From IMG/VR virus record IMGVR_UViG_3300031576_000001, positions 1 to 64,000 of that record: a stretch of DNA of 64,000 bases. One strand, 5' to 3'. Positions within the stretch are counted from its first letter, which is position 1, and each line of letters opens with the position of its first letter. Below are positions 1,044 to 25,063 of the stretch, piece by piece. The notes beneath the pieces were generated by a model. The model did not search any database. It was given only the letters and a program-made list of their open reading frames with translations, and was not told where the DNA came from. The translations under genes were made by a program, and so were the position numbers.

Positions 1044-1553
1044 TCAAAAACCGTGGTGATGGTGCTGAGCCATCCTGGGGAGCCCCTTGGGGGAGGGGAG
1101 GCGAGTGCCCAAGTACTCCCAACCTAGCTTACTCCCTGGGCGGTAACCTATTGTGCTTGTCTTGTCTGCCCCGGAGACAAACAGCAATTGTAGGGCGGTG
1201 TCAGGCATAGCTTCCTCGGGGAGGTCTACCTCTACGGAGAGGTTTCGTTCCTGAAGCGCCTTGACCAGCGACTCCAGGTCAGACGCCTCTTGGGGGGCTT
1301 CGTCCTTGATGGCGGCAATAAGGGCGACCCTGCCGGCGCCTGCCTTGACCAGCTTCAGACGAGCCATGACGGTACCCGAGGTAAAGCGCCAGCCCCCTTT
1401 GGGTGTGTTCTCCCCGGCGAGCTTCAAGACCATCCTGGCTAGCCCCACGGGCGAGCGCACCGAGGAGACTTCCGGCTTGGAGCCAGGGTAAATGCGTAGA
1501 ACCTCTGCGCAGAGGTCCGAAGGGGTAACCGGGGGGTGCTTTCTCGTTGTCAT
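1044..1553 (-). CDS. Hypothetical protein
   Basis: 169-aa ORF; the GGTGTA promoter-like motif lies 11 nt upstream of the ATG. Confidence 0.65.
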   Translation of the reverse strand: MTTRKHPPVTPSDLCAEVLRIYPGSKPEVSSVRSPVGLARMVLKLAGENTPKGGWRFTSGTVMARLKLVKAGAGRVALIAAIKDEAPQEASDLESLVKALQERNLSVEVDLPEEAMPDTALQLLFVSGADKTSTIGYRPGSKLGWEYLGTRLPSPKGLPRMAQHHHHGF

Positions 1554-1600
1554 CCCCCCTAGTGTACACCGCTGGCTAGGCTAGCTGCCAGCCCCCTCCC

Positions 1601-2101
1601 TCACTCCGAGCAGTCCTCCAGGGAGTCGAGCCAACGCCCCCTCACGTCGTCGAGGAAACTCTTGTCATCGTTGAGCACCTGGAGAGTGTCCGCCAACAAT
1701 TCCACGTCGTCCCCCGACTCGTGAAAGGTCACCCACCCCCGGGTAACCCAGACGTGCTCGTCCGGGGTAGGACCGTCATCGCGAGGGTACTCTTGGGTAA
1801 CTTCAGCCTCGACCGTGAGGTCGAAGCCGTCGTAGTTGAACGTGAACTCGTGCTGGCTCTTGTAGGGCATGATGACTCCTCTTACGCTGAGAGGTCGCGG
1901 GGGTTCACGTAAAAAGCAGCAGTGACCCGCCACGTCCGCGACGAGCGCCCGGTCAGCGTTGAGCCGGGCGATCTCGTCGTCGCTCAGCTCTGTCTCGTCG
2001 TCGCGCCAGGCGTTGACAATCACGGTCTCCTCCACGGTGGGCGACGAGACCACCAGATAGAGACCGTTGTGCTTGAACGTGTACGTGAATGCGTGGGACA
2101 T
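1601..2101 (-). CDS. Two small acidic paralogous proteins joined in frame (second start about 1870)
   Basis: Both halves share a F.F...G..L.V ... EL..D....LN.D....DV.G pattern, and each has its own GTGAAC-N16-CGTAA promoter. Confidence 0.6.
   Translation of the reverse strand: MSHAFTYTFKHNGLYLVVSSPTVEETVIVNAWRDDETELSDDEIARLNADRALVADVAGHCCFLREPPRPLSVRGVIMPYKSQHEFTFNYDGFDLTVEAEVTQEYPRDDGPTPDEHVWVTRGWVTFHESGDDVELLADTLQVLNDDKSFLDDVRGRWLDSLEDCSE
1882..1908 (-). promoter_or_regulatory. ECF-sigma-type promoter, copy 1
   Basis: Minus strand reads GTGAAC-cccgcgacctctcag-type 16-nt spacer-CGTAAGAGG; the pattern is conserved in 4 copies. Confidence 0.7.
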
Positions 2102-2109
2102 AACCCCTC

Positions 2110-2136
2110 TTACGCTGAGAGGTTGGCAGGGTTCAC
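2110..2136 (-). promoter_or_regulatory. ECF-sigma-type promoter, copy 2
   Basis: GTGAAC-N16-CGTAAGAGGGGTT followed directly by ATG 2101. Confidence 0.7.
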
Positions 2137-2317
2137 GGTTTTCTGTCAGGGTCTCTTTGTACCCACTGAGCTTCCATACACTTTCACGGTTTCCGTGTTC
2201 TGCTCACCTGAGTCCCCCTCCAGGGGCTCAGTGATAAAAACATCGTAAATAGTGGCAGGGTCATCTTTGACCTGTATGGAAACGCTGTATAGGTTAGGTA
2301 GGACTACCAACCCCCCT

Positions 2318-2650
2318 CTAGGGGTCGAGGGTTACCTTCCAAGAGGTAGGACCGAGGGTGCGGGGCAGCGGGTTCTTGATGTTCCGCCAAGAGGGGGCAG
2401 CACCGACAGAGGCAATCTTGACCACCTGTGACCATACGCGACCATCGCATTGTACGGTGACCTCTTCGGCGCGGTAGACGCCCGCGACTTGCAAAGCCTC
2501 GGTTCTGCCCTTGCGCTTCCTTGTGAAGACCGCCGGGGGGAGGATGACACGCTCGCCTAGCCGTAGGCGCCCACAGACCCCGCTACGTGCGGTAAAGGGT
2601 TCCTTGAGGTCCGCGAACACAAAGAGGGTGAGAATGTCAACCATCGGCAA
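2318..2650 (-). CDS. Hypothetical protein
   Basis: 110-aa ORF overlapping the stop of the upstream gene. Confidence 0.5.
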   Translation of the reverse strand: MPMVDILTLFVFADLKEPFTARSGVCGRLRLGERVILPPAVFTRKRKGRTEALQVAGVYRAEEVTVQCDGRVWSQVVKIASVGAAPSWRNIKNPLPRTLGPTSWKVTLDP

Positions 2651-3230
2651 GCCAAGCCCCCCTCGTTAGCTCGGGCACTTCCACGGCGCGTGCCCAGGGG
2701 GCAGACTTGATCACGATGACCCCCTGTTGGTCTAGCCCCGTGAGTACCAGGGAGACCGCTGCCATGAAGTCGTCGGAGCACACCGTGGCTACCGTGACCG
2801 CTGGTGTCGTGCTCAGGCGTACACTCTTGGTGCGCCCCCCCAGGCAGACCGCCGACCTGTCTACCCCCAGGGCAGCCGCAACCACCTCAGTCGTGGTGCT
2901 AGTGAAAGGTAGGGAAGCCACCCACACGTAGGTAGGTATATCCTTCAAGGTGAAGCACGGTAGCCCCTCGGTTACTCGCTCGTCCCCAACGAGAACCTTT
3001 ATGTGTGCCACCAGCGACAGACAAGCCAGGGCCGCCAAGAGGTTCACCGCGTCTAGGTTGGCTGCCTCGGTCACGACTTCACAGGGTCCAAGCTGTACCC
3101 TGACCGTGTAGAACCAGTCCCCATTCGTGAGGTACTTACCGTAGAGGGACGCCCCCGTAACTTCGGGCACAAAGGGCTTTATTAGGTCGAGTGTGTCTCT
3201 AGGCATGTGGTCTTTTCCGTGGTGGGTCAT
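2637..3230 (-). CDS. Hypothetical protein, paralog family member 3
   Basis: Contains VVAAALGVDRSAV..G...VL..L...G.I, shared with the two upstream genes; ATG 3230 overlaps the upstream stop. Confidence 0.7.
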   Translation of the reverse strand: MTHHGKDHMPRDTLDLIKPFVPEVTGASLYGKYLTNGDWFYTVRVQLGPCEVVTEAANLDAVNLLAALACLSLVAHIKVLVGDERVTEGLPCFTLKDIPTYVWVASLPFTSTTTEVVAAALGVDRSAVCLGGRTKSVRLSTTPAVTVATVCSDDFMAAVSLVLTGLDQQGVIVIKSAPWARAVEVPELTRGAWLADG

Positions 3231-3808
3231 ATCCACCCCTGCTTGTATTTGAGGTTGAGGCTCAGAATACCCTGGGCCTCTAGCGCTTGTAGGACAGCGC
3301 AAGTCCCCGCGACGCGCTCACTGGCGTAGTAGTCCCCGACACCAAAAACTCGTACAGGGCTCGCTAGCGTCGGTAGGCTGACCATGGCAACCCTCCCCGG
3401 GAACACCGCAGAGCGATGCACCCCGCAAGCCGCCGCCATGACCCCCCCGTGGTCTGCCTCTCTTGGTACAGCCCTCACCCAAGACACGGTGGGTAGCAAA
3501 GAACCCCGGTTGACTGCCTCCTCGGGGGTCATGTCCCGCAAAGGCTTGCGCAAGCGCGCCTCGACCCGGTGGGTGCTCTCCAAGAGGTCTAGCAGCACCA
3601 GCAGCGCCGCTGCCTCCAGGTTGAGCGCCTCTTGCCCCCAGAACATCGAGCAAAGGCGCACGCCCACAATGTAACCCGGTTGCCCGTGCAAGTAGGTGTG
3701 AGTCTCGGTTACCTCTGTTACCGCAGGCTCAAAGAACCGGAAGAACGTGAGGAGCGACGAGGGCTCTCCTGCGGCAGCCCGACGAGCCAGGTATTCCGCC
3801 CGGGTCAC
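3227..3808 (-). CDS. Hypothetical protein, paralog family member 2
   Basis: Contains VMAAACGVHRSAVFPG...VLQALEAQGIL. Confidence 0.7.
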   Translation of the reverse strand: MTRAEYLARRAAAGEPSSLLTFFRFFEPAVTEVTETHTYLHGQPGYIVGVRLCSMFWGQEALNLEAAALLVLLDLLESTHRVEARLRKPLRDMTPEEAVNRGSLLPTVSWVRAVPREADHGGVMAAACGVHRSAVFPGRVAMVSLPTLASPVRVFGVGDYYASERVAGTCAVLQALEAQGILSLNLKYKQGWI

Positions 3809-4386
3809 CCCAAACCCCCAAGGGTGATGATGCCCCGCGAGGCGAGAACGCTGAGCACCGCGTAAATGGCGGACTCTGCCACGGTGCCTTCATTGCAAGG
3901 CACCCGGACCTCCAGGGAATTGCTGAGCATCACGCTCACAGAAGAACGTGAGCCGGGCAGCCCGCCCACCACAACCCCGCACAAGGGCACCCCCAGCGCC
4001 GCCGCGACCACCCCGCGCCACCCCTCCTCCGGGGTCACGTCCACTACCCAGTCGTGGGTCGGAATCAATCCACTGTTGCTGCCACCTTGACCTTCGCACC
4101 AAGAGGGGACGGGTGCTTTCGGACCCGTAATCTCTAGTAGCCCCGTGTACTCCATGACCCCCAGCGTGGCGAGCAGAAGCAAGCCCTCGGGGCTACGCGC
4201 CCTTGTACGCGACGAGAACTGCCCGCCCGACCGCGGGTTCATCCCGATGGCAACGGACTCCAACACGCCCCCTTCTAGCGCGGCCTGGCGGTAGCTCGCG
4301 ATGGTGGGGGCGAACCGCTGGACCACGGAGAGGTAGGTGGGGTCGGGCTCGGGGGCAGGGGACTCGGTAGCTGAGGGCGTTGTCAT
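3805..4386 (-). CDS. Hypothetical protein, paralog family member 1
   Basis: Contains VVAAALGVPLCGVVVGG...VLSVLASRGII. Start moved to ATG 4386 because GGTGTA lies 11 nt upstream. Confidence 0.7.
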   Translation of the reverse strand: MTTPSATESPAPEPDPTYLSVVQRFAPTIASYRQAALEGGVLESVAIGMNPRSGGQFSSRTRARSPEGLLLLATLGVMEYTGLLEITGPKAPVPSWCEGQGGSNSGLIPTHDWVVDVTPEEGWRGVVAAALGVPLCGVVVGGLPGSRSSVSVMLSNSLEVRVPCNEGTVAESAIYAVLSVLASRGIITLGGLG

Positions 4387-4935
4387 AGACCCCACTGTAC
4401 ACCACCCCCTCGCTTCTCGCCAAACACGCCTTGCGCAACTGGCACAGAGGGTGTACAACCCCCGAGCCGGTTGTGTTTCATCCGGTACGCCCCCGCTAAT
4501 CACGGGGTCACCGTGCTCCCCCAGGCTAGTCCTGGGAACCCCCTCTCGGTCTGTCGGGGGTAGGCTCTTTGACAAGATGGGTAAGCTAAGCTCGGCGGCA
4601 GAAGCCCCTGCCAGTCTCTACCAAGAGGCTGGGGCAGGGCTAACCGATGGGTCTACGGGGGACTTCGACCCCCGGTGACCTACGCCGAGAATCCAGCCCT
4701 CCACGCACCTCCCCGTGCTCTACGCCTTCGGGCACCTAGAGCTACGGGGTTGAAACGTAGCCTCTCAGGAGAGGCTACTGGCATCACGGTGGAGGTCTCC
4801 CCGGTCAGCACAGGGTTGCAGTTGGCACAACCGCTGCAAGTGCTTCGATCCGGGGTCTAGGAAGTCAGGGAAGGTACGGTGTAGGACGCATACTACACTT
4901 ACCTACACCCTCCATATCACCTCCTCGGTTTCGTA

Positions 4936-5293
4936 GGGGGGTAGGGGGGTTAACCTTAAACGGTCTGTACTAACAGTACAGACCTAATTTCCTAGAGGAT
5001 CTCTCTTCATAGAAACACAAACCCTTGTGTTTCTAAGTCTGAAGAGGATCTTAGAGCCCCAAACACTAAAGAAAACAGCAATGATAACGCAAATAGTCCA
5101 ACAATAAGTCCAAATAGTCCAGCAAAAGATACAGAAACAGAAACAAATACCGCAAATAGTCCAACAGAAACCGCAAATACAGCAAGTCCAAGTAGTTCAG
5201 CAAACCGTTCAAGTACCTCAGCAAGTGCAAACGCAGATACAGACGATACGAGCGATGATAGTAGAGCGAGTAAAGTTAACCCCCCTACCCCCC
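4936..5293. repeat. 19-bp perfect inverted repeat (GGGGGGTAGGGGGGTTAAC / GTTAACCCCCCTACCCCCC) enclosing an A-rich tract with CAAATAGTCCA repeats; candidate replication origin
   Basis: Arms at 4936-4954 and 5275-5293, internal hairpins, strong strand bias, located between divergent gene blocks. Confidence 0.6.
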
Positions 5294-8685: not shown

Positions 8686-11600
8686 ATGCTGGTTCTCGAC
8701 GACACACGGGCGAAGGTCTATCAGGGCGACAGTGAGTTTGAGCTAGGAGAGCTAGCCAGCGAGTCTATAGACAGCATGGTGACCGACCCTCCCGCGGGAA
8801 TCGCTTTCATGCACGGTAAGACTTCCGGCTGGGATGCTCCCTCTACGTGGAAGTACCCTATCACCAGCCACGGCTTCAAGGATGACCCTGGTAAGTTCAG
8901 AAACCCGGCACCCTCGATAGGGCAGAGCACTCGAAACCCGGTGTGCCAGGTCTGTCACAAGCACAAGCGGGGTAAGAAGCGCTGTCAGTGTGAAGAGCCG
9001 GAGTTTGACGAGCGCGAACACGCCCGAAGCGACCGTGACATATTTATTGCCAAGATGACGGCAATCTTCAAGGAGTGCCTTCGAGTGCTCAAGCCAGGGG
9101 GTCACGCTGCGGTCTGGGCTATCCCTCGTACTGCACACTGGACCGCCATGGCGCTAGAGGAGGCGGGCTTTGAGGTGCGCGACTGTATATCGCACCTCAA
9201 AGACAACTCAGCCGAGCTAGCTAGCTTCTTTGAATCACTCTCGCCCTCTCAGCGTGAAATGTGGATGCGCGCCGAGCCTACCAACGGCTTGATGCTACAC
9301 GTCAACGGGAGCGGGTTTCCCAAGGGAAGAAATATCAGTAAAGAGATTGACGCGCAGTACGGGCGCATTCGATCCTCCGTGAAGCAAGTCAAGCAATCCC
9401 TGCGTGAGAAGTTTGACGCCAGTGGGAAGACCCGTACACAGATTGACAAGGAGTGCGGGTTTCGAGCCAGTAATTACCTCTCCGTAGAAGACGACACCAA
9501 GAGGGATGACCCTTGGTTTAACGTACTGCCCTCTCCTGAAAAATGGCTTGTCCTAAAAAAAGTGCTCGGGCTAGAGGACGAGACAGTCAGTGCCCAGCTA
9601 GACCAGTGGTTCAAGCAAGCCGAGCGTGAGCTTGTGGGTTGGAAAAAGACCGGTCCAGGGATACCCTTCTCTACAGCGGGTGGGCCTACGGAGCTACCTA
9701 TTACAGAGAGTCAGACGCCAGAAGGTAAGCAGTGGAAAGGGTGGAACGTAGCACTCAAGCCCTCTGTAGAGCACTGGCTACTCGTCCGTAAGCCTCTTTG
9801 TGAGGGTACCATTGTGGCTCAGGTTCTTGCCACCGGGACGGGGGCTCTCAACATTGACGCTTGCCGTGTCAAGGGTGGTGCGGGCTACGAAGAGGAAGTA
9901 GCCAAGAACATGGCTTCCTTCAAGAAGCTACATGAGAAGACTCCGGGCTGGAAAAACTCATCTGAGTTTGCCCCTGACGTGGACGGAGCCATGCTGGGTA
10001 GGTGGCCGTCTAACCTCCTCCTCAGTCACACGCAGAGGGTCATGTGTCAGCCCCGCCCTGACCTCTCCGCTGACGTGAAGGCTACGCTGTGGGCTTACTT
10101 TGAGTCGGAGCCCACCGAGGAGCTAGAGGTACGCCAGGAGGCAATCCCTCTTGGGTGGCGCCAGCTTTTCCTCCCTGTGCGTATCGAGGGTTGTAAGCAC
10201 GTAGGGACCAAGATTGTCCGTGCCCCGGTCATCAACCGGTTCGTGGACGGCATGAGGCCCTTCGGTGAGGGTGCGGGTCACAAGTACACTCAGACCGGGG
10301 GTGGTGTAGAGTCCCAAGCTGTTACAGACTGCAAACCCCCCTGCCCCGTGCCCGTGCTGGACAACCAAAGCGGTGACCGTAAGTCTCACGACACGGCTGA
10401 CACGGGTGGTTTTCGAGAGTCTATGCGAGACCCTTCCTGGCTAAAGAGTGGTACCCAACCCTCTTTGCCTCCCGGTCGGGGTGACACGGGCGGGGCTAGT
10501 CGGTTCTTTCCTGTGCTCTGTGCCCCTGAAACTCTAGACAACCAAAGCGGTGAGACCCGTAGTGCTTACCCTGGTAACCCCCAAGTGGCTTCAGCCTACA
10601 ACGCCAGGGACAAGTCAGACCAGAAGTCCCCCAAAGATGTCATCTTTGGGGGTAAAACCCCGGGGAAGGTCTACGGGGACACAGGGAGCGTCTCTCGGTA
10701 CTTCCCTGTCTTCTCTTGCGCGGCTGGCAGCCTGGATGACCAAAGCGGGGAGCGTCGTGGGGGTGGACCTGTTTACACAGCCAACCAAGGTAAGGGTTAC
10801 TGGGCAGGGGGTATGACTGGCGTGGCTACGCCTTTTAGCAGAGAGGCTGACGATGGGGGCGCCTCAAGGTTCTTTCCCACGTTTACTTGCGCGCCCGACA
10901 CCTTGGACAAGCAAACTGGGGAGAGAACCTCGACCCTCACCGGTAAAGCTGACCCCTCTCGCGCCCACACCAACCCAGGTCAAACGTCCAAGGAGTACCT
11001 CTGGGGTAACATCGGTCACGAAGCCTCAACCCATGTTTACGCTGACTCTGGTGGGGGCTCCCGGTTCTTCCCCACGTTTAGCCCGGATTGCGCTTTGCAT
11101 ATCCTCGATATGCAAAGCGGTGACCTCACACCCCACGCGCACAGAGAGGGTTACACTCCGAGGCTGGACACTGGCGTGTACAACCCTGGGCGCAAGGGTT
11201 CTCAAAGCGTGTGGGGTGGGGTTGCCCGGGGGGGCGCCTCTCAGTTTTACCCGTCATTTAGTCCCGAGTGTGCTTTGGAGGTTCAGAACCTCCAAAGCGG
11301 TGACTTGCGCGGAAACACTGGTGGTTCCGGGGGGGTAAGCTCAATCTTTGGTGGGCTCGACGCTTCAAAGACAACCTACAAGGCTTACGGCGACCACGGG
11401 GGTGCTGCTAGGTTCTTCCCCTCCTTTGAGCCCGAGTGCGTCCCGAGTCTCATTGATGCACAGAGCGGGGAGACGGTCTCTTCGCCTCGTACCGGTGACG
11501 ACGCGGGCACCGCCATGGATAAGACCCGTGAGGGCTGGCGGTTCAAGCGAGCTAACGGGGGGTTCTCCGACTCAGGGGGTGGCTCACGGTTCTTCCCCTC

Positions 11601-12114
11601 CTTTGAGCCCGATTGTCCTCTGAACGTCAATGACGTTCAGAGCGGGGTGTCTGTGTCTAGGGCGGGTGGCGTCGCAGGTGGTGAAATCTTCGGTAGTGCC
11701 ACAGGGTTTGTACCACGGAAGGGTCAGAATGACTCTGGTGGGGGGGGTCGCTTCTTCCCCTCGTTTGAGCCTGACCCTACCTTGCCTCCCTTCTACTACA
11801 CGCCCAAGGCGTCTACCGCGGATCGCATCTTGCCTGACGGGTCGAAATCACCTCACCCAACGGTCAAATCGCACGCCCTCATGTCGTGGCTCATCAAATT
11901 GGTCACACCGCCGGGTGGGGTAGTTCTTGACCCCTTCTCAGGTTCCGGGTCCACGCTAGTCTCGGCTGTCAAGCTGGGCTTTCGAGCCGTGGGTATAGAG
12001 CAGGACGAGACCTACATTGGGGTCATCCGTCAACGCCTGGCGGCAGCGCTGGCAGAGAGCACCGACAATGTAGCCAGTCGTGCTGCAATGGACCTAATGC
12101 ACGACATCGAGTGA
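8686..12114 (+). CDS. Beta-class N4/N6 DNA methyltransferase with 8 tandem variable cassettes
   Basis: N-terminal VTDPPAG (motif IV variant) and LRVLKPGG; C-terminal HPTVK...VLDPFSGSGST...GIEQD (motif I); eight LDxQSG...GGxSRFFP repeats. Confidence 0.9.
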   Translation: MLVLDDTRAKVYQGDSEFELGELASESIDSMVTDPPAGIAFMHGKTSGWDAPSTWKYPITSHGFKDDPGKFRNPAPSIGQSTRNPVCQVCHKHKRGKKRCQCEEPEFDEREHARSDRDIFIAKMTAIFKECLRVLKPGGHAAVWAIPRTAHWTAMALEEAGFEVRDCISHLKDNSAELASFFESLSPSQREMWMRAEPTNGLMLHVNGSGFPKGRNISKEIDAQYGRIRSSVKQVKQSLREKFDASGKTRTQIDKECGFRASNYLSVEDDTKRDDPWFNVLPSPEKWLVLKKVLGLEDETVSAQLDQWFKQAERELVGWKKTGPGIPFSTAGGPTELPITESQTPEGKQWKGWNVALKPSVEHWLLVRKPLCEGTIVAQVLATGTGALNIDACRVKGGAGYEEEVAKNMASFKKLHEKTPGWKNSSEFAPDVDGAMLGRWPSNLLLSHTQRVMCQPRPDLSADVKATLWAYFESEPTEELEVRQEAIPLGWRQLFLPVRIEGCKHVGTKIVRAPVINRFVDGMRPFGEGAGHKYTQTGGGVESQAVTDCKPPCPVPVLDNQSGDRKSHDTADTGGFRESMRDPSWLKSGTQPSLPPGRGDTGGASRFFPVLCAPETLDNQSGETRSAYPGNPQVASAYNARDKSDQKSPKDVIFGGKTPGKVYGDTGSVSRYFPVFSCAAGSLDDQSGERRGGGPVYTANQGKGYWAGGMTGVATPFSREADDGGASRFFPTFTCAPDTLDKQTGERTSTLTGKADPSRAHTNPGQTSKEYLWGNIGHEASTHVYADSGGGSRFFPTFSPDCALHILDMQSGDLTPHAHREGYTPRLDTGVYNPGRKGSQSVWGGVARGGASQFYPSFSPECALEVQNLQSGDLRGNTGGSGGVSSIFGGLDASKTTYKAYGDHGGAARFFPSFEPECVPSLIDAQSGETVSSPRTGDDAGTAMDKTREGWRFKRANGGFSDSGGGSRFFPSFEPDCPLNVNDVQSGVSVSRAGGVAGGEIFGSATGFVPRKGQNDSGGGGRFFPSFEPDPTLPPFYYTPKASTADRILPDGSKSPHPTVKSHALMSWLIKLVTPPGGVVLDPFSGSGSTLVSAVKLGFRAVGIEQDETYIGVIRQRLAAALAESTDNVASRAAMDLMHDIE
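10351..11775 (+). repeat. Eight coding tandem repeats (about 55-67 aa each) with conserved borders and variable cores
   Basis: Units start LDNQSG, LDNQSG, LDDQSG, LDKQTG, LDMQSG, QNLQSG, IDAQSG, NDVQSG and end in (D)xGxx(S/A/G)(R/Q)(F/Y)(F/Y)P. Confidence 0.9.
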
Positions 12115-12351
12115 CCCCAGGGACAGGGAACCACCTCTCAGTTCCAGAGGATGGGTGCCCCCTTCCGCGAGGCTACGGTTTCCCTTATGGTCACGTCGGA
12201 CACTGTGCATATCGCGTTGCAAAGACGCCCCACGCTACCAAAATGACACAGCCCCTTCATTTTGGTAACTGTGGTGTCATGCAGTGTATTTCAGGGTGTG
12301 GTAATAACATTTAGTAGGGTAATGAGGTGAAAGGTAGGTGTGATCTTTCTT

Positions 12352-12378
12352 GTGAAGCCCTTCAGCCTCTCAGCGTAA
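12352..12378 (+). promoter_or_regulatory. ECF-sigma-type promoter, copy 3
   Basis: GTGAAG-N16-CGTAAGAGGGATT followed by ATG 12387. Confidence 0.7.
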
Positions 12379-12386
12379 GAGGGATT

Positions 12387-12821
12387 ATGAACAAGCTGAG
12401 TAAGACGCAGTGCGGGGAGTTTGAGGCGGTCAACGTGGCGTTTCAGGGCGCCTGGCAGGACGCCTCTGAGGCGGTCGAGACGTACAACCTCAAGGAGACG
12501 ACCTGGAAAGAGCTGAAGGTCACCCTGGACGACCTGGAGTCCGCCAAGGACGCCGCGCACACCCTCATCACTGCTACCGTGGAGGCCATGCAGGAATACT
12601 ACGACTCGAAGAGCGAGAAGTGGCAGGAGGGGGACAAGGGTACGGCGTACTACGGCTGGATCGAGTCCTGGCAGGATATGGCAGACCGTTTGCAGGACAC
12701 CATGGTCAAGATGACGTGCGTTGCCGAGGTTGAGCAAGGCAACGTGCTCTTGGAAGACCTCATCACGGACACTCTGGAGGAAGACTGCCTCAACGAGTTG
12801 ACCACGGAGCCCGATGGTTGA
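12387..12821 (+). CDS. Acidic hypothetical protein
   Basis: Host-like GC3 codon bias; YYDSKSEKWQEGDKG segment; follows the ECF-type promoter. Confidence 0.75.
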   Translation: MNKLSKTQCGEFEAVNVAFQGAWQDASEAVETYNLKETTWKELKVTLDDLESAKDAAHTLITATVEAMQEYYDSKSEKWQEGDKGTAYYGWIESWQDMADRLQDTMVKMTCVAEVEQGNVLLEDLITDTLEEDCLNELTTEPDG

Positions 12822-12920
12822 CCGAGGACTGAGCCCCCCCAACGGAGCACGAAGCCCTGGTACGGGCGGGTACCAGGGCTTTCCTCTTTTACACCCCGCC
12901 TAGAGGTAGGAGCCCCTGTC

Positions 12921-19541: not shown

Positions 19542-21101
19542 ATGGGCCAATCCAAGTCGCACAAGAACTTCATGGCGGGCACGAGCTACACAGTCTCGCC
19601 CCTACTCACCCTTCGTATCGCAGCGGCGTCGTGCTTCTTCGGGGAGCCCACGTTCTACGGAGCCAAGGACAGCAAGCCGGTCGCGCCCTCCCAGCAACCC
19701 CAAGCGGTACAGAAGCACCTGAGTGTAACCCTCGGGGGTCTGGGGCAACCTGACTTCTCGGGGCTCACGCCCTCTCAGCGCATGGAGAAGGTCATTGACA
19801 ACGCGCTCGACGCGGACCCCGAGGCTACCCTCCAAGAGGCGGTTCTGCTCCGTAAGCAGGGTCACATTCGTACCACGCCCCAGGTCATCATGGTCCGGGC
19901 GGCGCGTCACCCCAAGGTGAGGGGCACGGGGCTCATCCGGCAGTACGCACCCAACATCCTGTCCAGGGGGGATGAGTCAGCGGTACAACTCAAGTACCTC
20001 AGCAACCTAACGGGCAAGGGGCCCATCCCCAACGCCCTCAAGAAGGCGTGGGCTGCTCACCTCTCGGGCATGAATGAGTACACGCTGGCCAAATACGCCA
20101 AGGACGGGCTGACCGACGTGGCGAACGTGTGTCACCCCGCAGGCAACCCTCTCTTGGAGAAGCTGGTCAAGGGCAAGCTCTCTCAGGGGGGCTCGACTTG
20201 GGAAGCCATCGTGAGCAAGGATGGCTCGACCAAGGAGGCATGGTCCAAGGCGGTCTCCGTCATGGGGCACATGGCGCTCCTACGCAACCTGCGCAACTTC
20301 CACGAGAAGGGCGTAGACCCCGCCGTCTACCTGGACAAGCTGGTGAACACCGCCAAGGACGGCAAGCAATTGCCGTTCCGCTACTGGTCCGCTTACAACG
20401 CCCTATCCGAGGGGAGCGCTACCACGCGGCAAGCCATCGAGGAGTGCTTGAAGAACTCGCTGGGTTTCCTGCCCTTCTTCAAGGGTAAGGTCGCGTCCCT
20501 CTGCGACAACTCAGGTTCCGCGGTGTCTGCCCGGGTGTCGTGCATGAGCGACGTGAACGTGGCGACCATTGCCAACCTCTCGGCGCTTCTCACGGGCTAC
20601 CAGTCGGACGAGGGCTGGGTCGGGCTCTTTGGGGACCGGCTTACGATGCGCCAGGTGGACCGCAGCAAGGCGCCCCTGGCTCAGCTTGCCGCTCTGAACG
20701 TGCTGGGTAAGCAGGTAGGCGGCTACACGGAGAACGGGATTTGGCTCTTCTGGGACGAGGCGATCCGCACCAAGAAGCACTGGGATCACGTTTTTGTCTA
20801 CAGCGACATGCAAGCCGGTCACGGTGACTTGTACGGCTCAGACCCGAGCCAATACAAGGCTTTCCAGTGGGTTCAGAACCCCAGCCACATTGACGTGGCT
20901 CGTCTCATCGGAGCCTACCGCGCCAGCGTGAACCCGAAGGTCAACGTGTTCCTGGTTCAGTGCGCGGGCTACGCAGACGCGATCCTGCCCGAGGAGTACT
21001 ACCGCACCAGCATCCTCGGCGGCTGGGGTGACGGTATCTTCCACTACGCGGACCAGATGACCCGTCTCTTTGACGGTCTGGACGCTTCGCAAGCAACTTG
21101 A
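19542..21101 (+). CDS. Ro60/Rsr-like TROVE-domain RNA-binding protein with a C-terminal vWA domain
   Basis: FFGEPTFY, YTLAKY, TWEAIVS, MGHMALLRNLRN, KQLPFRYWSAY, MIDAS-like DNSGS, VYSDMQ. Confidence 0.93.
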   Translation: MGQSKSHKNFMAGTSYTVSPLLTLRIAAASCFFGEPTFYGAKDSKPVAPSQQPQAVQKHLSVTLGGLGQPDFSGLTPSQRMEKVIDNALDADPEATLQEAVLLRKQGHIRTTPQVIMVRAARHPKVRGTGLIRQYAPNILSRGDESAVQLKYLSNLTGKGPIPNALKKAWAAHLSGMNEYTLAKYAKDGLTDVANVCHPAGNPLLEKLVKGKLSQGGSTWEAIVSKDGSTKEAWSKAVSVMGHMALLRNLRNFHEKGVDPAVYLDKLVNTAKDGKQLPFRYWSAYNALSEGSATTRQAIEECLKNSLGFLPFFKGKVASLCDNSGSAVSARVSCMSDVNVATIANLSALLTGYQSDEGWVGLFGDRLTMRQVDRSKAPLAQLAALNVLGKQVGGYTENGIWLFWDEAIRTKKHWDHVFVYSDMQAGHGDLYGSDPSQYKAFQWVQNPSHIDVARLIGAYRASVNPKVNVFLVQCAGYADAILPEEYYRTSILGGWGDGIFHYADQMTRLFDGLDASQAT

Positions 21102-21163: not shown

Positions 21164-21209
21164 GTGCTACGTGTACCTCGCAGTCAGTTCAGGGTACACG
21201 TAGCACTTT
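21164..21209 (+). terminator. 14-bp perfect hairpin followed by TTT (terminator or processing stem)
   Basis: GTGCTACGTGTACC / GGTACACGTAGCAC. Confidence 0.5.
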
Positions 21210-21279
21210 CCCGGTTCGTTCAGTGGTAGGACAGGATGTTTTGGTTATCCTTACCGTGGTTCGATTCCACGACCGGGGG
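21209..21279 (+). tRNA. tRNA-Gln(TTG)
   Basis: Cloverleaf; anticodon loop TTTTGGT; TTCGATT T loop. Confidence 0.8.
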
Positions 21280-21280
21280 C

Positions 21281-21949
21281 TCATACAAACTGAGGCGTAG
21301 CAGACAGGGCTGAGGCTAACTTGCTCAGCCGCTTGTCGATGGCCTCGTATTCGCGCACCACGTTGCGTTCTGCGTAGGAGAGGTCAGACGAGGGGATCTG
21401 TTTCAGAACCTCCATGATGCCGGCCCTGTTACGCATAACGTCCCGGTTGGCGAAGAACTCTAGCTCGTCCGCCAGACCCTCAAACTTGCGTAGCGTGACC
21501 GCCAGACCGAGAAGGGTAGCCTTGACCGCTGCGATCTCCTTCTCAGCCGATCCGCCCAGCTTGTAGGTTATGTCGTCGAAAGCCTTCTGGGGAAAGTAGT
21601 TCCGAGGGTCTCTCAGTTGATCCAGGGTTTGGTTCTGAAAAGTTCCCCAGTAGACGCCTCCCGTGCCCTGCTCGACCTTGGCTGTGCCTCCAAAGGTACC
21701 AGGGACCGTCTGACCGCGAGACTGCACGTCCAACGCAAAGAAAAAGTTGGGTGTGTACTCACCCGGGGTGTCTAGCCACCAAGAGAAGTTAACCCCCATG
21801 ACGGTTTTGTGTCCACCTCGATACTCGCAGGCTAGCCCGCTCTTTTGCGTGAAGTAGGCAGCGTAAGCCTTACCAGCCCGCCCCATCAGGCGCCCCACGT
21901 CAGCGAGAGGGTTGGCGCCAGCCGCGCCACGGTCGTAATTGTAGGTCAT
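21281..21949 (-). CDS. Hypothetical protein
   Basis: Long ORF; likely start MTYNYDR at 21949. Confidence 0.7.
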   Translation of the reverse strand: MTYNYDRGAAGANPLADVGRLMGRAGKAYAAYFTQKSGLACEYRGGHKTVMGVNFSWWLDTPGEYTPNFFFALDVQSRGQTVPGTFGGTAKVEQGTGGVYWGTFQNQTLDQLRDPRNYFPQKAFDDITYKLGGSAEKEIAAVKATLLGLAVTLRKFEGLADELEFFANRDVMRNRAGIMEVLKQIPSSDLSYAERNVVREYEAIDKRLSKLASALSATPQFV

Positions 21950-22139
21950 GGTTTCCAAGAGCGACGGGGACAAGACCCTTACAGGGGCACGCGACACCCT
22001 CTCAGAGGTTTGCGAAGCATTGTGCGTCATCCATGGTGACGCGATGCGTCAAAGACCCGAAGGTGGGTGGGTGTGCTACCCATGTGAGGCAGAAGAAAAA
22101 CAAACCCGTCAGGAAGCCTGTACAAAACTTGTCTATCCC

Positions 22140-22248
22140 GGTGTAGCAAGATACAGTAGCCGAGAACCCGCCGGCAGTTGAGGTAGGGTCGGAGCTACAG
22201 ACCGAGCGAGGTTCCCTTAGATGGGAGCGTGGTTCCTTGACAACTGAA
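22140..22248 (+). promoter_or_regulatory. tRNA-array leader: GGTGTA promoter motif, hairpin, and boxA-like GTTCCTTGACAACTGAA
   Basis: 22232-22248 resembles the rrn-leader boxA (GTTCTTTGAAAACTGAA) and lies immediately before the first tRNA. Confidence 0.55.
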
Positions 22249-22255
22249 ACCTTTT

Positions 22256-22335
22256 CTAGCTCACGTAGCTGGTGCTACAGGCGGTCTGTAAAACCGCTGT
22301 CCATGACATGCGGGGTTCGATTCCCCGGGGCTAGG
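22256..22335 (+). tRNA. tRNA-Tyr(GTA)
   Basis: GCGGT-CTGTAAA-ACCGC; variable arm present. Confidence 0.8.
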
Positions 22336-22339
22336 CTGA

Positions 22340-22412
22340 CAAGCTGTAGGCGCAAGGAGTGCTACCAGCATGGAATGCTGGGGGTGTGTAGGTCATATCT
22401 ACACCGGCTTGT
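22340..22412 (+). tRNA. Atypical tRNA, anticodon GGA (Ser?), short variable arm
   Basis: CCAGC-ATGGAAT-GCTGG; degenerate T loop. Confidence 0.5.
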
Positions 22413-22415
22413 CAA

Positions 22416-22515
22416 TCGAGGAAGCCACAGGCGTGGCCTTTGGGGGTGATACCCTGAAGCGGGGTGTGCAGTGTGCATAACTGGGCACCAGCGGGTCCGA
22501 TTCCCACTCCTCGGG
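22416..22515 (+). ncRNA. Atypical tRNA-like RNA with a long extra arm
   Basis: CGAGGA/TCCTCG acceptor; GGG-TCCGATT-CCC T arm. Confidence 0.45.
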
Positions 22516-22555
22516 CTTGTACCGTGCTCACCGGGGCTATACGGTGAGGTTTTAT

Positions 22556-22628
22556 CCGCGCAAATCCTTGGTGGTCTAGGTACCTGTCTGATATACAGGC
22601 GATGGGAGTTCGACTCTTCCTGCGCGGA
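22556..22628 (+). tRNA. tRNA-Ile(GAT)
   Basis: CCTGT-CTGATAT-ACAGG. Confidence 0.8.
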
Positions 22629-22630
22629 CT

Positions 22631-22703
22631 GTGGCCGGTGGTTGCATGGTGCGACCGTCTAACTGTGAATTAGACTTCAGAGGGTTCGATTCCCTTCGGT
22701 CAC
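22631..22703 (+). tRNA. tRNA-His(GTG)
   Basis: TCTAA-CTGTGAA-TTAGA. Confidence 0.8.
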
Positions 22704-22929
22704 TCTGGCGTGCCTAGGGCACGTCTTACGCTTTCCGTTCCGGCTTGAAAGTCTTGGGCTGCGCGCGTACACCCAAGAGGAGTAGAGAGAGGGAGACTCT
22801 AACCAGATTGATCCTCTGGTGTACATCTGAAAAGAGGGGAGACCTGTGTGCGAGTCACAGGGAGGGCACTAGTCGAGAGCAGTGTTGAATGGTTCAGCGA
22901 GGGAGAGGATGCCCGACTGCCCGACGAAT

Positions 22930-23001
22930 TCCGAGGTTGTCAACGGTAGGGCGACCACACTGTTACTGTGGTGTTTGCAGGTCCGACTCCTGCCCTCGGA
23001 G
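22930..23001 (+). tRNA. tRNA-Asn(GTT)
   Basis: CCACA-CTGTTAC-TGTGG. Confidence 0.75.
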
Positions 23002-23303
23002 CCCGGTACGCGGAAGGGGTAAGCGATGCCTCTTCGTGCGTGCCTGAGATTACGTGCTCTAGTTCAACGCTAGAACAACGTCACTGGCTCGTCGTGGGCC
23101 GGCGTGTAGATGCAACGCACGGTGTGCTCCGCGCTAGCCTTTGGTTAGTTGCACAGACTACCCTTTGGTTTGACACCCAAAGGTGGCCCGTCTTGGACAA
23201 GACAGGGGTATCTCACCCCTCGGAGTCCCATGAGGATGACGAAATCAGAACCGGCGGAGGCTGTGTTTACACGGTCGAAGAAACCGGGGACGGAGAGAAC
23301 TAT

Positions 23304-23376
23304 GCCACCCAAGCACATCTGGTGATTGCAGTCCCCTGAAGAGGGAAACGGCCCGGTTCGATCCCGGGGGGTGGCA
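23304..23376 (+). tRNA. tRNA-Phe(GAA)
   Basis: TCCC-CTGAAGA-GGGA. Confidence 0.8.
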
Positions 23377-23449
23377 CTACGGGCGACAAGACTTGTGGTT
23401 CGAGTCCACACTGATTCTTCTGAGAGACGAAGGGTCGGGTAACGGATAA

Positions 23450-23523
23450 CAGCGTGAAGTCTTATGGCGAGACGCCAGTTCGGGGAACTGGAGATCGGAG
23501 GTTCAATTCCTCTCACGCTGACC
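23450..23523 (+). tRNA. tRNA-Pro(GGG)
   Basis: CCAGT-TCGGGGA-ACTGG. Confidence 0.75.
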
Positions 23524-23597
23524 GCGGAAGAGTGGCACGGTTCCATAGCTGGCTCATACCCAGAATACATTCAGTTCAACTCTGATTTCCGCCACCA
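23523..23597 (+). tRNA. tRNA-Met(CAT)
   Basis: CTGG-CTCATAC-CCAG; encoded CCA end. Confidence 0.75.
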
Positions 23598-23607
23598 GTG
23601 AAGACAT

Positions 23608-23684
23608 TGCGGCGTGGAGCAGCCTGGAAGCTCGCAAGGCTCATAACCTTGAGGTCGTCGGTTCAAATCCGACCGCTCGCGACA
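23608..23684 (+). tRNA. tRNA-fMet-like (CAT)
   Basis: GTGGAGCAGCCTGGAAGCTCG...CTCATAA...GGTCGTCGGTTCAAATCCG is close to bacterial initiator tRNA. Confidence 0.85.
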
Positions 23685-23685
23685 A

Positions 23686-23790
23686 AGAGTGTAGTCAAAG
23701 AAGAGGGTTACTTCCTCTAGTAAGAGAAACCTGACGGTTCGATTCCGTCCCGGCGTGGTCGCCATACACTCTCTTCGTTCATCTCACTCT
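23686..23790 (+). ncRNA. YrlA-like Y RNA with an internal T arm
   Basis: AGAGTG-T-AG-TCA..GAAGAGGGTTACTTC..GACGG-TTCGATT-CCGTC..CTCTCTTC..CT-CACTCT. Confidence 0.8.
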
Positions 23791-23793
23791 CTA

Positions 23794-23867
23794 TCCTCGG
23801 TAGCTCAAGTGAAGAGCACCTCCTGTTTACAGGGGTTGATGCTAGGTTCGATGCCTAGCCCTTGGGC
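23794..23867 (+). ncRNA. tRNA-like RNA with an expanded anticodon arm (CTG-TTTA-CAG)
   Basis: Canonical D and T arms; imperfect acceptor stem. Confidence 0.55.
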
Positions 23868-23917
23868 AATCCGTGATGGGGCAACTCGGGCAACAGGGTA
23901 CCCAGCACGGTCGTATT

Positions 23918-23986
23918 GTGCAAGAGTCAAGGCGACAACGTGGTTTCCAAATCCACGGAAGGTGGGTTCGATTCCTCCCTTGCACG
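23918..23986 (+). tRNA. tRNA-Trp(CCA)
   Basis: CGTGG(T)-TTCCAAA-(T)CCACG. Confidence 0.65.
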
Positions 23987-23988
23987 CT

Positions 23989-24088
23989 AGGTGTAGTCAA
24001 GCCCAGAGGTTCATCATACAATAGATGCTGGCTCCCTTGCGAGAGCCAGCACCCCGTACCAAACCACCTCTTGGTAACAATCTCACCT
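23989..24088 (+). ncRNA. Y-RNA-like RNA
   Basis: AGGTG-T-AG-TCA..AGAGGTTCATC..internal hairpin..ACCTCT..CT-CACCT. Confidence 0.7.
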
Positions 24089-24093
24089 TTTCT

Positions 24094-24113
24094 GGCGTCG
24101 TGGCTCAGTGGTT
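24094..24113 (+). pseudogene. 5' fragment of a tRNA disrupted by the HNH insertion
   Basis: GGCGTCGTGGCTCAGTGGTT ends at the HNH promoter. Confidence 0.55.
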
Positions 24114-24134
24114 GGGCCGGTGTATGCACATCTT

Positions 24135-24500
24135 ATGGCTGAATCAGAGCTTGTGACTTGTTGTGGTAAGACAATACAAAAGAGGCACCTCAAGACGCAC
24201 TTGAGGCTCAAGCACAAAGACTTCTCTCTCATACGTAGGGACTCAACACGGAGAGAGCGCCTTATTGTTGAGAGGGGGCATCGTTGTCAGGTGTGTGGCA
24301 TGTCTGAATGGATGGGCGTCAACATACCCATTGAGCTTGACCATACTGATGGCAATTGTGAAAACAATACGAGGGAGAACTTGAGGCTAATATGCCCCAA
24401 TTGCCATGCCCAAACTCCGACCTATCGGGGTAAGAATATGGGTAAAAGTGGGCATACCAAGCGAGCGACTATACTGAAGAAGTATGGTAGTTATCGTTGA
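24135..24500 (+). CDS. HNH homing endonuclease
   Basis: CQVC...ELDHTDGNCENNTRENLRLICPNCHAQT; lower GC; GGTGTA 10 nt upstream. Confidence 0.9.
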   Translation: MAESELVTCCGKTIQKRHLKTHLRLKHKDFSLIRRDSTRRERLIVERGHRCQVCGMSEWMGVNIPIELDHTDGNCENNTRENLRLICPNCHAQTPTYRGKNMGKSGHTKRATILKKYGSYR

Positions 24501-24503
24501 TTC

Positions 24504-24574
24504 GGTGCCGTAGCTTGAAGGTCAAGCCAGGAGCTTTTAACTCTTAGTTGAGGGTTCGATTCCCTCCGGCGCCA
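24504..24574 (+). tRNA. tRNA-Lys(TTT)
   Basis: AGGAG-CTTTTAA-CTCTT. Confidence 0.8.
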
Positions 24575-24632
24575 CGAGGCTCGGGATACTTTTTGCAGCC
24601 TGCAATAGTGTTCACAACCTGAGCCTTACTAG

Positions 24633-24706
24633 GGGAGTCTAGTTGGTCTGGTGACCGCGCTTGCTTCATAAGCAAGTTTAGAAGGGTTCGATCCCCTTGG
24701 CTCCTA
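24633..24706 (+). tRNA. tRNA-Met/Ile2(CAT)
   Basis: CTTGC-TTCATAA-GCAAG. Confidence 0.7.
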
Positions 24707-24905: not shown

Positions 24906-24913
24906 CGACAGAT

Positions 24914-24986: not shown

Positions 24987-25063
24987 CTATGGGTGCGTCT
25001 CTTAGGACGCCAGGGTCGCCTGGTACCTTGACACACCCGTTACGTGACTTACCGTCACGTTTC

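Follow-up and report, generated by a model that had tools for sequence, protein, structure and literature searches.

Introduction

Multispecific DNA methyltransferases are known only among the cytosine-C5 enzymes of a few Bacillus phages, with SPR, phi3T, rho11s and H2, alongside M.BssHII, as examples (Trautner and colleagues, cited in PMC7544214 and PMC4081073). In these enzymes one catalytic domain is combined with several short (about 40 aa) variable modules in tandem in the variable region, where the target-recognition domains (TRDs) abut one another without long conserved borders, and independent specificity of each TRD is proven. They are phage-borne and presumed to counter restriction, yet how several recognition modules share one active site has never been solved structurally. 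In the unrelated beta-class amino-methyltransferases the motif order is IV-TRD-I (PMC7544214), and solved N6-adenine members include CcrM, M.BceJIV and M1.HpyAVI. In CcrM, Loop-6E (residues 172-194) contacts the target adenine and the phosphates (PMC6787082).

Here we analysed a stretch of 64 kb (hereafter the window) of a 322-kb contig of a giant phage. A preliminary description, made from the sequence alone, had claimed a methyltransferase with eight tandem cassettes of conserved borders and unrelated cores between motif IV and the SAM-binding motif, and had proposed that the cassettes are collected and shuffled by recombination at the borders, letting one enzyme protect against several restriction systems.

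Results

The eight-unit array described beforehand is genuine. A single open reading frame of 1142 aa without internal stop carries, between motif IV and motif I, eight tandem units of 56-67 codons, each consisting of D-x-Q-S-G, a core of 28-42 aa, and D-x-G-G-x-S-R-F-F-P-x-F, with one Cys per junction. The units are found at aa 559-611, 618-676, 684-733, 741-798, 808-858, 868-914, 924-973 and 983-1027 (nt 10360-11766), with a start-to-start spacing of 162-201 nt that is always a multiple of 3. The features are as follows (no strand is assigned to palindromes and hairpin; P followed by four digits denotes a relative).

8686-12114, + strand: whole gene, 1142-aa beta-class amino-DNA methyltransferase, apparently orphan, with no nuclease partner detected nearby
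8785-8799, + strand: motif IV, D-P-P-A-G, the catalytic loop, with Ala where the canonical motif has Tyr/Phe/Trp
8944-8991, + strand: Cys-rich insertion (C-x2-C ... C-x-C), zinc-finger-like as read from the sequence, also present in mycobacteriophage relatives; AlphaFold2 pLDDT below 50
9835-10014, + strand: family-conserved middle region, from GTGALNIDACRV to GRWPSN, with nearly invariant columns G384, G386, N389, R394, G438, R439, P441 and N443 in a family alignment (A1)
10189-10359, + strand: beta-hairpin with a first variable loop ('loop A', INRFxDGxxPFGxGAGHxY), followed by D-C-x3-C-P-V-x-V-L leading into unit 1; AlphaFold2 strands 504-512, 515-519, 534-538 and 541-548 and helix 554-561; the same loop motif recurs in P0007 and as a core in P0023
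10360-10518, + strand: unit 1 (core 10375-10482), only a borderline homologue (P0290)
10537-10713, + strand: unit 2 (core 10552-10677), 'RRSAYPGNP' core class shared with single-unit P0145 and P0089
10735-10884, + strand: unit 3 (core 10750-10848), orphan core
10906-11079, + strand: unit 4 (core 10921-11043), 'RPSTLTGRADP...H.NPG...VYAD' class, the commonest in the family
11107-11259, + strand: unit 5 (core 11122-11223), orphan core, weakly similar to unit 4
11287-11427, + strand: unit 6 (core 11302-11391), orphan or borderline core
11455-11604, + strand: unit 7 (core 11470-11568), 'EGWRF(K/R)R' class
11632-11766, + strand: unit 8 (core 11647-11730), 'QSGVSVSRAGG...PR.GHND' class
10628-10652: perfect palindrome (12-bp arms, 1-nt centre) inside the core of unit 2
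11091-11119: perfect palindrome (13-bp arms, 3-nt centre) at junction 4/5, encoding C-A-L-H-I-L-D-M-Q-S
11272-11298: perfect palindrome (13-bp arms, 1-nt centre) at junction 5/6
11618-11642: perfect palindrome (12-bp arms, 1-nt centre) at junction 7/8
10864-10933: imperfect long hairpin at junction 3/4 (26-nt arms, 81% complementary), pairing the RFFP codons with the QTGER codons
11791-11955, + strand: FYYTPKAS (aligned to CcrM beta6), HPTVKS (motif X / Loop-6E equivalent) and DPFSGSGST (motif I, SAM binding; 11929-11955); AlphaFold2 pLDDT above 90 from aa 1040

The assignment to the beta-class amino-methyltransferases rests on a profile match to Pfam N6_N4_Mtase (PF01555; 80.6 bits against a cut-off of 26.7), the only Pfam family matched, with no C5 family recovered, and PHROG DNA methyltransferase families and PADLOC (MTase_II/oMTase) agree. 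Congruent with the class-beta order, DPPAG at aa 34-38 is followed by the variable region, HPTVKS at 1057-1062 and DPFSGSGST at 1082-1090, the latter conforming to F-x-G-x-G, with G1086 and G1088 invariant in 129 sequences. The fourth residue of motif IV is however Ala, thus lacking the aromatic side chain that stacks on the target base; the same variant is found in 46 of 193 relatives, with DPPS/DPPC in 7 more, as a conserved subfamily (DPP[ASC]GI.FMGK.WD), and the sequence alone leaves it undecided whether the enzyme is active. Searches of PDB sequences returned M1.HpyAVI, CcrM, M.BceJIV and an N4C MTase over aa 1042-1123. Window residues 1040-1128 align to CcrM 169-257, so the array ends just before beta6/Loop-6E, in the target-recognition slot.

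We next assessed the borders, which the preliminary description had considered conserved at the DNA level. Rather, they are conserved mainly at the protein level: over 17 border codons pN is 0.21 and pS 0.70, a ratio of about 0.12, indicating that all eight borders are under purifying selection, so the copies are old and maintained. The longest identical DNA run shared by two junctions is 25 nt, and otherwise at most 17 nt. The uniform AGC codon for the Ser of QSG was initially taken as a DNA-level constraint, a reading we rejected as relatives also use AGY, the uniformity being ancestral. The preliminary description had also overlooked that each junction carries exactly one conserved Cys, with no other Cys in the array. 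Tandem Repeats Finder reported nothing, because the copies are too diverged at the DNA level, a divergence that also argues against an assembly artefact.

By local alignment the cores are mutually unrelated, with scores of 13-32 matching the shuffled null (mean 19.5, 99th percentile 31), except for units 4/5, which score 40. Comparison of each core with single-unit enzymes had been put forward in advance as a check, with cores that are disordered linkers without homologues counting against the idea. The cores of units 2, 4, 7 and 8 match the core of single-unit enzymes elsewhere: unit 2 with scores of 71 and 65 against a null maximum of 46-54; unit 4 with 109 matching cores and a best score of 96 against a null maximum of 47, and with 12 invariant columns across 48 sequences of the class; unit 7 with 19 matching cores and scores up to 91; and unit 8 with 4 matching cores (55, 53, 51 and 47) against a null maximum of 45. 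On the other hand, units 3, 5 and 6 have no detectable homologues (best score for unit 6 of 48 against a null maximum of 49-50). Pfam on the array alone, and a profile of the unit-4 class against PDB sequences, gave nothing meaningful, with only weak Fer4-like hits to the C-x3-C-P-V border of P0081.

Unit number and order in relatives, likewise named beforehand as informative, were then compared. As the preliminary description had supposed, relatives mostly carry one unit: this was the case for Mycobacterium phage MooMoo gp65, Dorothy gp75 and an ORF of uncultured phage LR745208, and for 249 of 324 collected relatives, of which about 60 carry 2-4 and none carries more. The borders are the near-invariant motifs of this large family, with D, Q, G and D.GGASRFF conserved in at least 90% of 129 and of 88 relatives. 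The same core class sits at different positions in different arrays, and adjacent units are of different classes in 34 of 44 cases. Among single-unit pairs at least 90% identical over 70 backbone residues only 18% share a core class, and the unit-4 class occurs on both DPPY and DPPA backbones. In three close relatives one core has been replaced precisely between conserved borders: P0004 differs from P0002/P0003 by a clean replacement of about 110 nt covering only the unit-2 core, inside flanks that are 85-95% identical. Scans of viral and metagenome contigs for close relatives returned only the source contig, so unit number in sister phages could not be compared, and megablast of 12 kb against phage records found no match. 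Amplification has recurred, as the 2-4 units of relatives have different repeat boundaries, including a module of about 145 aa repeated four times in P0081 and P0196.

Structure prediction, also suggested at the outset, gave no confident fold for the array (AlphaFold2 pLDDT about 25-35), nor for the core of a single-unit relative (below 50). A Foldseek search with the single-unit model returned only generic beta-class methyltransferases over about 100 residues, which says nothing about the unit. The array is rich in Gly/Ser/Thr/Pro and poor in hydrophobic residues, as in a disordered linker, and the net charge of the cores is only 0 to +3. Beta-class TRDs are however typically disordered without DNA (PMC7544214), compatible with the low pLDDT.

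The four perfect palindromes of 25-29 bp, three of them at cassette junctions, were missed in the preliminary description, and we have no explanation for them. They are local features, as sliding-window folding energy shows that the array is not globally more structured than the rest of the window (mean z -0.25), and a terminator and promoter scan shows that they are not terminator-like. A search of the genes of seven relatives found no palindromes at junctions.

We also considered systems that diversify cassettes by dedicated machinery. No second copy of any core is found in the 64-kb window by blastn or tblastn, and the flanking ORFs have no Pfam or PADLOC hits, arguing against a diversity-generating retroelement target or a store of silent cassettes, although the rest of the 322-kb contig was not examined. 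Similarly, the arrangement does not correspond to the phase-variable shufflons of Type I hsdS inversion systems, as the units are direct repeats, the palindromes have centres of 1-3 nt and do not flank segments, and no recombinase lies next to the gene.

Discussion

Aggregated, we favor, with moderate confidence, that the gene encodes a phage beta-class amino-DNA methyltransferase, probably N6-adenine, in which the hypervariable module of the family has been amplified to eight tandem copies with different cores. The module normally occurs once, immediately before strand beta6 in the target-recognition slot, and consists of a helix ending in L-D-x-Q-S-G, a variable core of 28-45 aa, and D-x-G-G-A-S-R-F-F. 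Our data establish that the copies are old, that every copy keeps the family-invariant border residues under purifying selection, that half of the cores belong to conserved classes serving as the only core of other enzymes, and that cores are swapped in relatives as cassettes between conserved borders. What we infer beyond this is that each core is an alternative DNA-contact (specificity) loop served by the single catalytic domain, so that the enzyme would methylate several motifs, or a broadened set, and protect the 322-kb genome from several restriction systems; that the borders, with one Cys each, dock a given cassette next to the active site; and that new cassettes arise by tandem duplication followed by core replacement. 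The preference for N6-adenine is likewise by inference only, from the leading Asp in motif IV and the nearest named families, which are adenine-specific.

The interpretation offered in the preliminary description is thus supported only in part. The placement in the TRD slot, the single unit of relatives and the exchangeable behavior of cores in relatives are supported, whereas frequent shuffling by recombination at DNA-identical borders in this gene is not, as synonymous sites are saturated and shared runs are at most 25 nt. Multispecificity is plausible but untested: methylation was not assayed, nor was it measured whether each module confers its own target sequence and can be deleted independently, and no evidence here shows that the cores contact DNA or set specificity. 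Other parts of the protein, the helical insertion at about aa 215-340 and loop A at 515-534, could set specificity instead, and by what means eight cassettes could each reach one active site is not known.

Among the alternatives, the one that survives best, although we consider it unlikely, is that the array is a flexible, largely disordered DNA-tethering or spacer region, adding non-specific DNA affinity or reach, for example processivity along a very large genome, while sequence specificity, if any, is set elsewhere, in the helical insertion or loop A. The enzyme might then be single-specific, or non-specific like M.EcoGII, and non-specific beta-class phage enzymes are known (PMC7544214). 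The low AlphaFold2 confidence, the Gly/Ser-rich and slightly basic composition and the absence of a Pfam or PDB match for the unit are congruent with this view. A spacer would however not keep distinct, strongly conserved core classes across distant enzymes, nor near-invariant borders in all eight copies, and precise core-for-core replacement between close relatives fits a specificity element better.

Less likely still, the module may be a surface under diversifying selection for another reason, such as a site recognised by a host inhibitor, protease or defence sensor, or a partner-binding loop, with the extra copies acting as decoys or alternative binding sites. The hypervariability of the core relative to the backbone, the swapping of cassettes and the independently recurring amplification also fit an arms-race surface. 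Yet no partner or inhibitor is known, the neighbouring genes give no hint, and the position next to Loop-6E is explained more simply by DNA recognition.

A neutral or selfish expansion, where hairpin-stimulated replication slippage multiplied a tolerant loop into functionless copies, appears improbable. Palindromes and short direct repeats at junctions are classic substrates for slippage, and the loop evidently tolerates very different sequences, but the 1.4-kb frame is open, four cores belong to conserved classes, and border residues are kept despite saturated synonymous sites, so every copy has been under long-term protein-level selection. Finally, pseudo-substrate or auto-regulatory loops, with the invariant Gln of D-x-Q-S-G entering the (D/N)PPY-type pocket as the GGQ glutamine does in HemK-type enzymes, gating or being methylated by the enzyme, are very unlikely, as only the invariance of the Gln and the established methylation of glutamine amides by (D/N)PPY enzymes (PMC7544214) speak for them, without structural or sequence support, in a family with every hallmark of DNA methyltransferases and annotated as such in the phage records.

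A more far-reaching possibility, which we regard as doubtful on present evidence, is that this would be the first multispecific amino-(N6/N4) DNA methyltransferase, with one catalytic domain served by eight exchangeable recognition loops docking in turn through their conserved borders and single Cys, and with the coding array punctuated by perfect DNA hairpins that would promote in-frame gain, loss or replacement of cassettes, in effect an evolvable, modular library of specificities inside one gene. Literature searches found no description of tandem recognition modules in amino-methyltransferases, which, given incomplete coverage, is weak evidence of novelty. An eight-module array of this kind in an unrelated, beta-class enzyme would show that phages reached the same solution independently of the C5 enzymes. 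It would also offer a natural series (1, 2, 3, 4 and 8 modules) for dissecting the mechanism, a map from core classes to DNA motifs that could be used to predict or engineer specificity, and a partial explanation of how very large phages cope with many restriction systems. The junction palindromes raise the separate question of how coding repeats are built and maintained.

Compared with the closest systems, the single-unit phage enzymes (MooMoo gp65, Dorothy gp75 and the LR745208 ORF) share the domain order and the conserved blocks DPP(Y/A)G..FMGK.WD, SGFPKS, GTGALNIDACR, GRWPxN, LDxQ(S/T)G, GGASRFF, (F/Y)xAKA, HPTVKP and DPFxGSGT, but carry one variable module rather than eight, and the window protein has extra insertions at aa 450-500. 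The multi-unit relatives from metagenomes, P0002/P0003/P0004 (3 units), P0007, P0116 and P0230 (up to 4) and P0081/P0196, show tandem amplification of the same region with different core classes in one protein, and the unit-4 class of the window is unit 3 in P0002-P0004; they have however at most 4 units, their repeat boundaries differ, none has junction palindromes, and none of these proteins has been characterised. The resemblance to the C5 enzymes of the SPR/phi3T type, drawn already in the preliminary description, is an analogy of architecture, with several short modules in tandem in the variable region, and does not imply membership, as fold order and chemistry differ (C5 with a PC motif, against an amino-methyltransferase with DPPx) and there is no sequence relationship. 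With CcrM, M.BceJIV and M1.HpyAVI the C-terminal SAM-binding half aligns, and the array sits just before the equivalent of beta6/Loop-6E, whereas these enzymes have no repeated module and recognise DNA through loops 2B and 45 and a C-terminal domain.

Genomic context and identity of the methyltransferase

The window constitutes the first 64 kb of a 322,633-bp viral contig, IMGVR_UViG_3300031576_000001, which has the look of a huge phage. Congruent with this, 38 tRNA genes and a tmRNA were detected, as well as an SbcD-like nuclease, GroEL, a ribonucleotide reductase and a RecD/Dda-like helicase, which are hallmarks of a huge phage, and the following features were recorded in the window:

4757-4778, 4962-4984 and 5010-5035: three perfect hairpins clustered in an apparently non-coding stretch with lower GC (0.56) and strong AT skew (0.21), possibly a regulatory or origin-like region
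8686-12114 (+): the methyltransferase ORF
12851-12882: a 12-13 bp stem followed by a T-rich tail, just after ORF 12327-12821, resembling an intrinsic terminator
19542-21101: a 519-aa ORF with a TROVE (Ro60-like) domain, immediately upstream of the tRNA array
21209-31256 (+): the dense array of 38 tRNA genes, with the tmRNA at 30256-30633 (+)
32621-33799 (-): SbcD-like nuclease
34708-36306: GroEL
38973-41855: ribonucleotide reductase large subunit, possibly with an insertion, since the match is in two stretches
42029-44341: RecD/Dda-like helicase

The methyltransferase ORF is uninterrupted, without any internal stop, and encodes 1142 aa. Pfam places the protein in N6_N4_Mtase (80.6 bits against a cut-off of 26.7), with motif IV (DPPAG) at aa 34-38 and motif X (HPTVKS) and motif I (DPFSGSGST) at aa 1057-1090. 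Sequence hits in the PDB, to M1.HpyAVI, CcrM, M.BceJIV and an N4C enzyme, cover only aa 1042-1123, and no restriction partner or defence gene was detected among the neighbours.

An old and selected array of eight units

We then assessed the array itself, and the observation in the preliminary description, eight constant-border, variable-core cassettes within the reading frame, holds. Eight units occupy aa 559-1027 (nt 10360-11766), each consisting of D-x-Q-(S/T)-G, a core of 28-42 residues, D-x-G-G-x-S-R-F-F-P-x-F and a 6-9 residue linker, with periods of 162-201 nt that are all in frame. Each junction carries exactly one Cys (aa 612, 678, 735, 802, 862, 918 and 977 of the ORF, nt about 10519-11616), and there is no other Cys in the array. 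In relatives this border reads W-x-C-x3-C-P-V, which yields weak Fer4-like Pfam hits in P0081 (P numbers denote collected relatives). This may be a metal-binding or docking element. Core-to-core local alignment scores (13-32) sit on the shuffled null, with the exception of units 4/5, which score 40.

The copies are old, as over 17 border codons pairwise pS is 0.70 (saturated) and pN is 0.21, a ratio of about 0.12. Thus, the array is not an assembly artefact, and every copy has been kept by protein-level selection. The same data indicate that the conservation of the borders at the DNA level, as claimed initially, is mostly a by-product of amino-acid conservation: the longest identical run shared by two junctions is 25 nt, and otherwise at most 17 nt.

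The unit belongs to a large phage and metagenome family

The borders are not peculiar to this gene, but represent the most conserved motifs of a large phage and metagenome family. Its consensus runs GRWPAN...C..GCPV..LD.QSG, a variable segment, and then Y.D.GGASRFF......F.Y.AKAS..ER...HPTVKP...DPF.GSGTT, with D, Q, G and D.GGASRFF present in at least 90% of members. Mycobacteriophage MooMoo gp65 and Dorothy gp75, and an ORF of uncultured phage LR745208, each carry one unit. Some family members, Dorothy gp75 (1471-4152 of its locus, L001) and also P0013, P0028, P0072 and P0182, are interrupted after the W-L-Y-G motif by an intein-like insertion, with a Cys-start insert and LAGLIDADG_3 Pfam hits in several of them.

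A comparison of unit number in relatives had been proposed at the outset, and we exploited two word-indexed searches and one exhaustive HMMER search of 1.84 billion representatives to this end. In the exhaustive search no protein matched the array better than 81 bits.

Table. Units per protein among the 324 relatives collected.
Units per protein: number of proteins
0: 15
1: 249
2: 44
3: 10
4: 5
8: 1 (the window protein)

Amplification has happened several times, with different repeat boundaries: about 60 aa in the window, about 70 aa, including W-E-C-x-P-x-C-P, in P0002-P0004, about 100 aa, including RWPANV, in P0008 and P0010, and about 145 aa in P0081 and P0196. In the latter two the larger module is repeated four times, running from GRWPSN through a beta-hairpin, loop A, C-P-V-K-A-L-D-D-Q-S-G and the core to GGASRFF. 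P0081 (locus L014, 5001-7979) lies on a 407-kb contig, an independent amplification of the same region on another very large contig, while P0196 also has a long low-complexity insertion splitting motif X from motif I. Loop A of the window protein (10228-10287, aa 515-534, INRFxDGxxPFGxGAGHxY) lies upstream of unit 1 and recurs in P0007 at the same place, as well as in P0023 as the core of a regular unit. Thus, the two variable loops can hold the same sequence class.

Next, we positioned the array relative to known folds. Window aa 1040-1128 align to CcrM 169-257, and FYYTPKAS therefore corresponds to strand beta6 and HPTVKS to the end of Loop-6E, which in CcrM contacts the target adenine and flanking phosphates (PMC6787082). 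The array ends about ten residues before this point, in the segment between motifs IV-VIII and X/I where class-beta enzymes carry their target-recognition domain (PMC7544214).

The cores behave as cassettes

Whether the individual cores match those of single-unit enzymes had been singled out in advance as a test of the cassette view, and we therefore compared the eight window cores with 360 cores from other proteins, using shuffled-core nulls. Unit 4 has 109 matches, with a best score of 96 against a null maximum of 47, unit 7 has 19 matches with scores up to 91, unit 8 has 4 and unit 2 has 2, whereas unit 1 has one borderline match and units 3, 5 and 6 have none. Most matching proteins carry that core as their only one. 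The unit-4 class (R-P-S-T-L-T-G-R-A-D-P...H..P-G...V-Y-A-D) has 12 invariant columns in 48 sequences, a degree of conservation that is not how a passive linker behaves. In the genes of P0002 (locus L010, 3281-3298) and P0003 (locus L005, 8083-8098), the conserved R-P-S-T-L-T-G segment of this class is encoded by a perfect 16-18 bp palindrome (CCGTCAACGTTGACGG), while unit 4 of the window is not palindromic.

Clustering gave about 100 classes among 223 cores. Arrays usually combine different classes (34 of 44 adjacent pairs), and the same class appears at different positions in different arrays. Moreover, among single-unit pairs at least 90% identical over 70 backbone residues only 18% share a core class, and the unit-4 class occurs on both DPPY and DPPA backbones. 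The most direct evidence comes from the genes for P0002, P0003 and P0004, which are 85-95% identical at the DNA level over about 1.1 kb, except for about 110 nt where P0004 is 20-40% identical to the other two. This block is exactly the core of unit 2, with breakpoints in Q-S-G-E-L-x-S-G and in S-G-G-A-S-R-F-F. Core replacement between conserved borders therefore happens in nature, although it could not be shown for the window gene itself.

Structure prediction

Structure prediction had likewise been suggested beforehand, and AlphaFold2 was used with family alignments. For the single-unit relative P0087 (mean pLDDT 75) we recovered a confident catalytic core and a helix over C-P-V-x-x-L-D-E-Q, but pLDDT below 50 for the variable core and about 45-55 for GGASRFF. 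For the window protein the N- and C-terminal halves are confident, with pLDDT about 25-35 across aa 565-1036. The array is Gly/Ser/Thr/Pro-rich and the cores have a net charge of 0 to +3, which fits a disordered region, but also fits the statement that beta-class TRDs are disordered without DNA (PMC7544214). The alignment is also shallow for any single core class, and Foldseek, Pfam and PDB profile searches recognise nothing in the unit. Disordered cores lacking homologs had been named as an outcome that would speak against recognition cassettes: the predictions are of low confidence throughout the array, while homologous cores were found for units 2, 4, 7 and 8.

Palindromes in the coding array

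Unexpectedly, and not noticed in the preliminary description, the array is also rich in palindromes. The whole 64-kb window contains only eight perfect hairpins with arms of at least 10 bp and a loop of at most 6 nt, and four of them, 25-29 bp in length, lie in this 1.4-kb array:

10628-10652: inside the core of unit 2
11091-11119: at junction 4/5
11272-11298: at junction 5/6
11618-11642: at junction 7/8

The three junction palindromes are each found at the same place in the unit (C-x-L-x-x-x-x-x-Q-S). Their outer arms are similar, but the inner arms differ and remain perfectly complementary. In shuffles that keep the protein and permute synonymous codons, 959 of 1000 gave none and none gave three or more. 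Junction 3/4 has a longer imperfect hairpin, and at junctions 2/3 and 6/7 the RFFP codons pair with the SGE codons.

In each perfect palindrome the downstream arm encodes the consensus residues and the upstream arm non-consensus ones, and in unit 2 the upstream arm coincides with a 3-residue insertion relative to the homologues P0145 and P0089. The upstream arm therefore appears to have been rewritten as the complement of the downstream arm, which could result from template switching (snap-back synthesis) or from selection for a hairpin. The genes of seven relatives have no junction palindromes, and those of the window are not terminator-like. Their role is unexplained. It is possible that they are slippage or recombination hotspots that favour in-frame gain or loss of cassettes, or they may be mutational scars.

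Mechanistic interpretation and relation to known enzymes

Aggregated, what the evidence demonstrates is a selected, eight-fold amplification of the hypervariable TRD-slot module of the family, with cores drawn from distinct conserved classes. Beyond this we infer, with about even confidence, that each core is an alternative DNA-contact loop, and that the enzyme therefore methylates several motifs and protects the phage from several restriction systems. The interpretation put forward in the preliminary description is supported in part, and multispecificity itself is plausible but untested. How eight modules would reach one active site is not known, but the conserved borders and the single Cys per junction are candidate docking elements, and beta-class enzymes also work as dimers with division of labour (PMC7544214). 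A caveat concerns activity, as motif IV reads DPPA and lacks the usual aromatic residue, although 46 of 193 relatives share this variant.

Among the alternatives, a flexible, non-specific DNA tether or spacer is the one that survives best, yet we consider it unlikely. An arms-race surface unrelated to specificity is less probable still. Neutral slippage expansion, which the pN/pS result contradicts, is improbable, and a pseudo-substrate glutamine is very improbable.

The protein is a member of a known enzyme class with a family-typical module, while the eight-fold array, the evidence for cassette classes and core swapping, and the junction palindromes appear undescribed in the literature that we were able to search. 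If the inferred mechanism is correct, the enzyme would be an architectural analogue of the SPR/phi3T C5 enzymes, rather than a member of that family.
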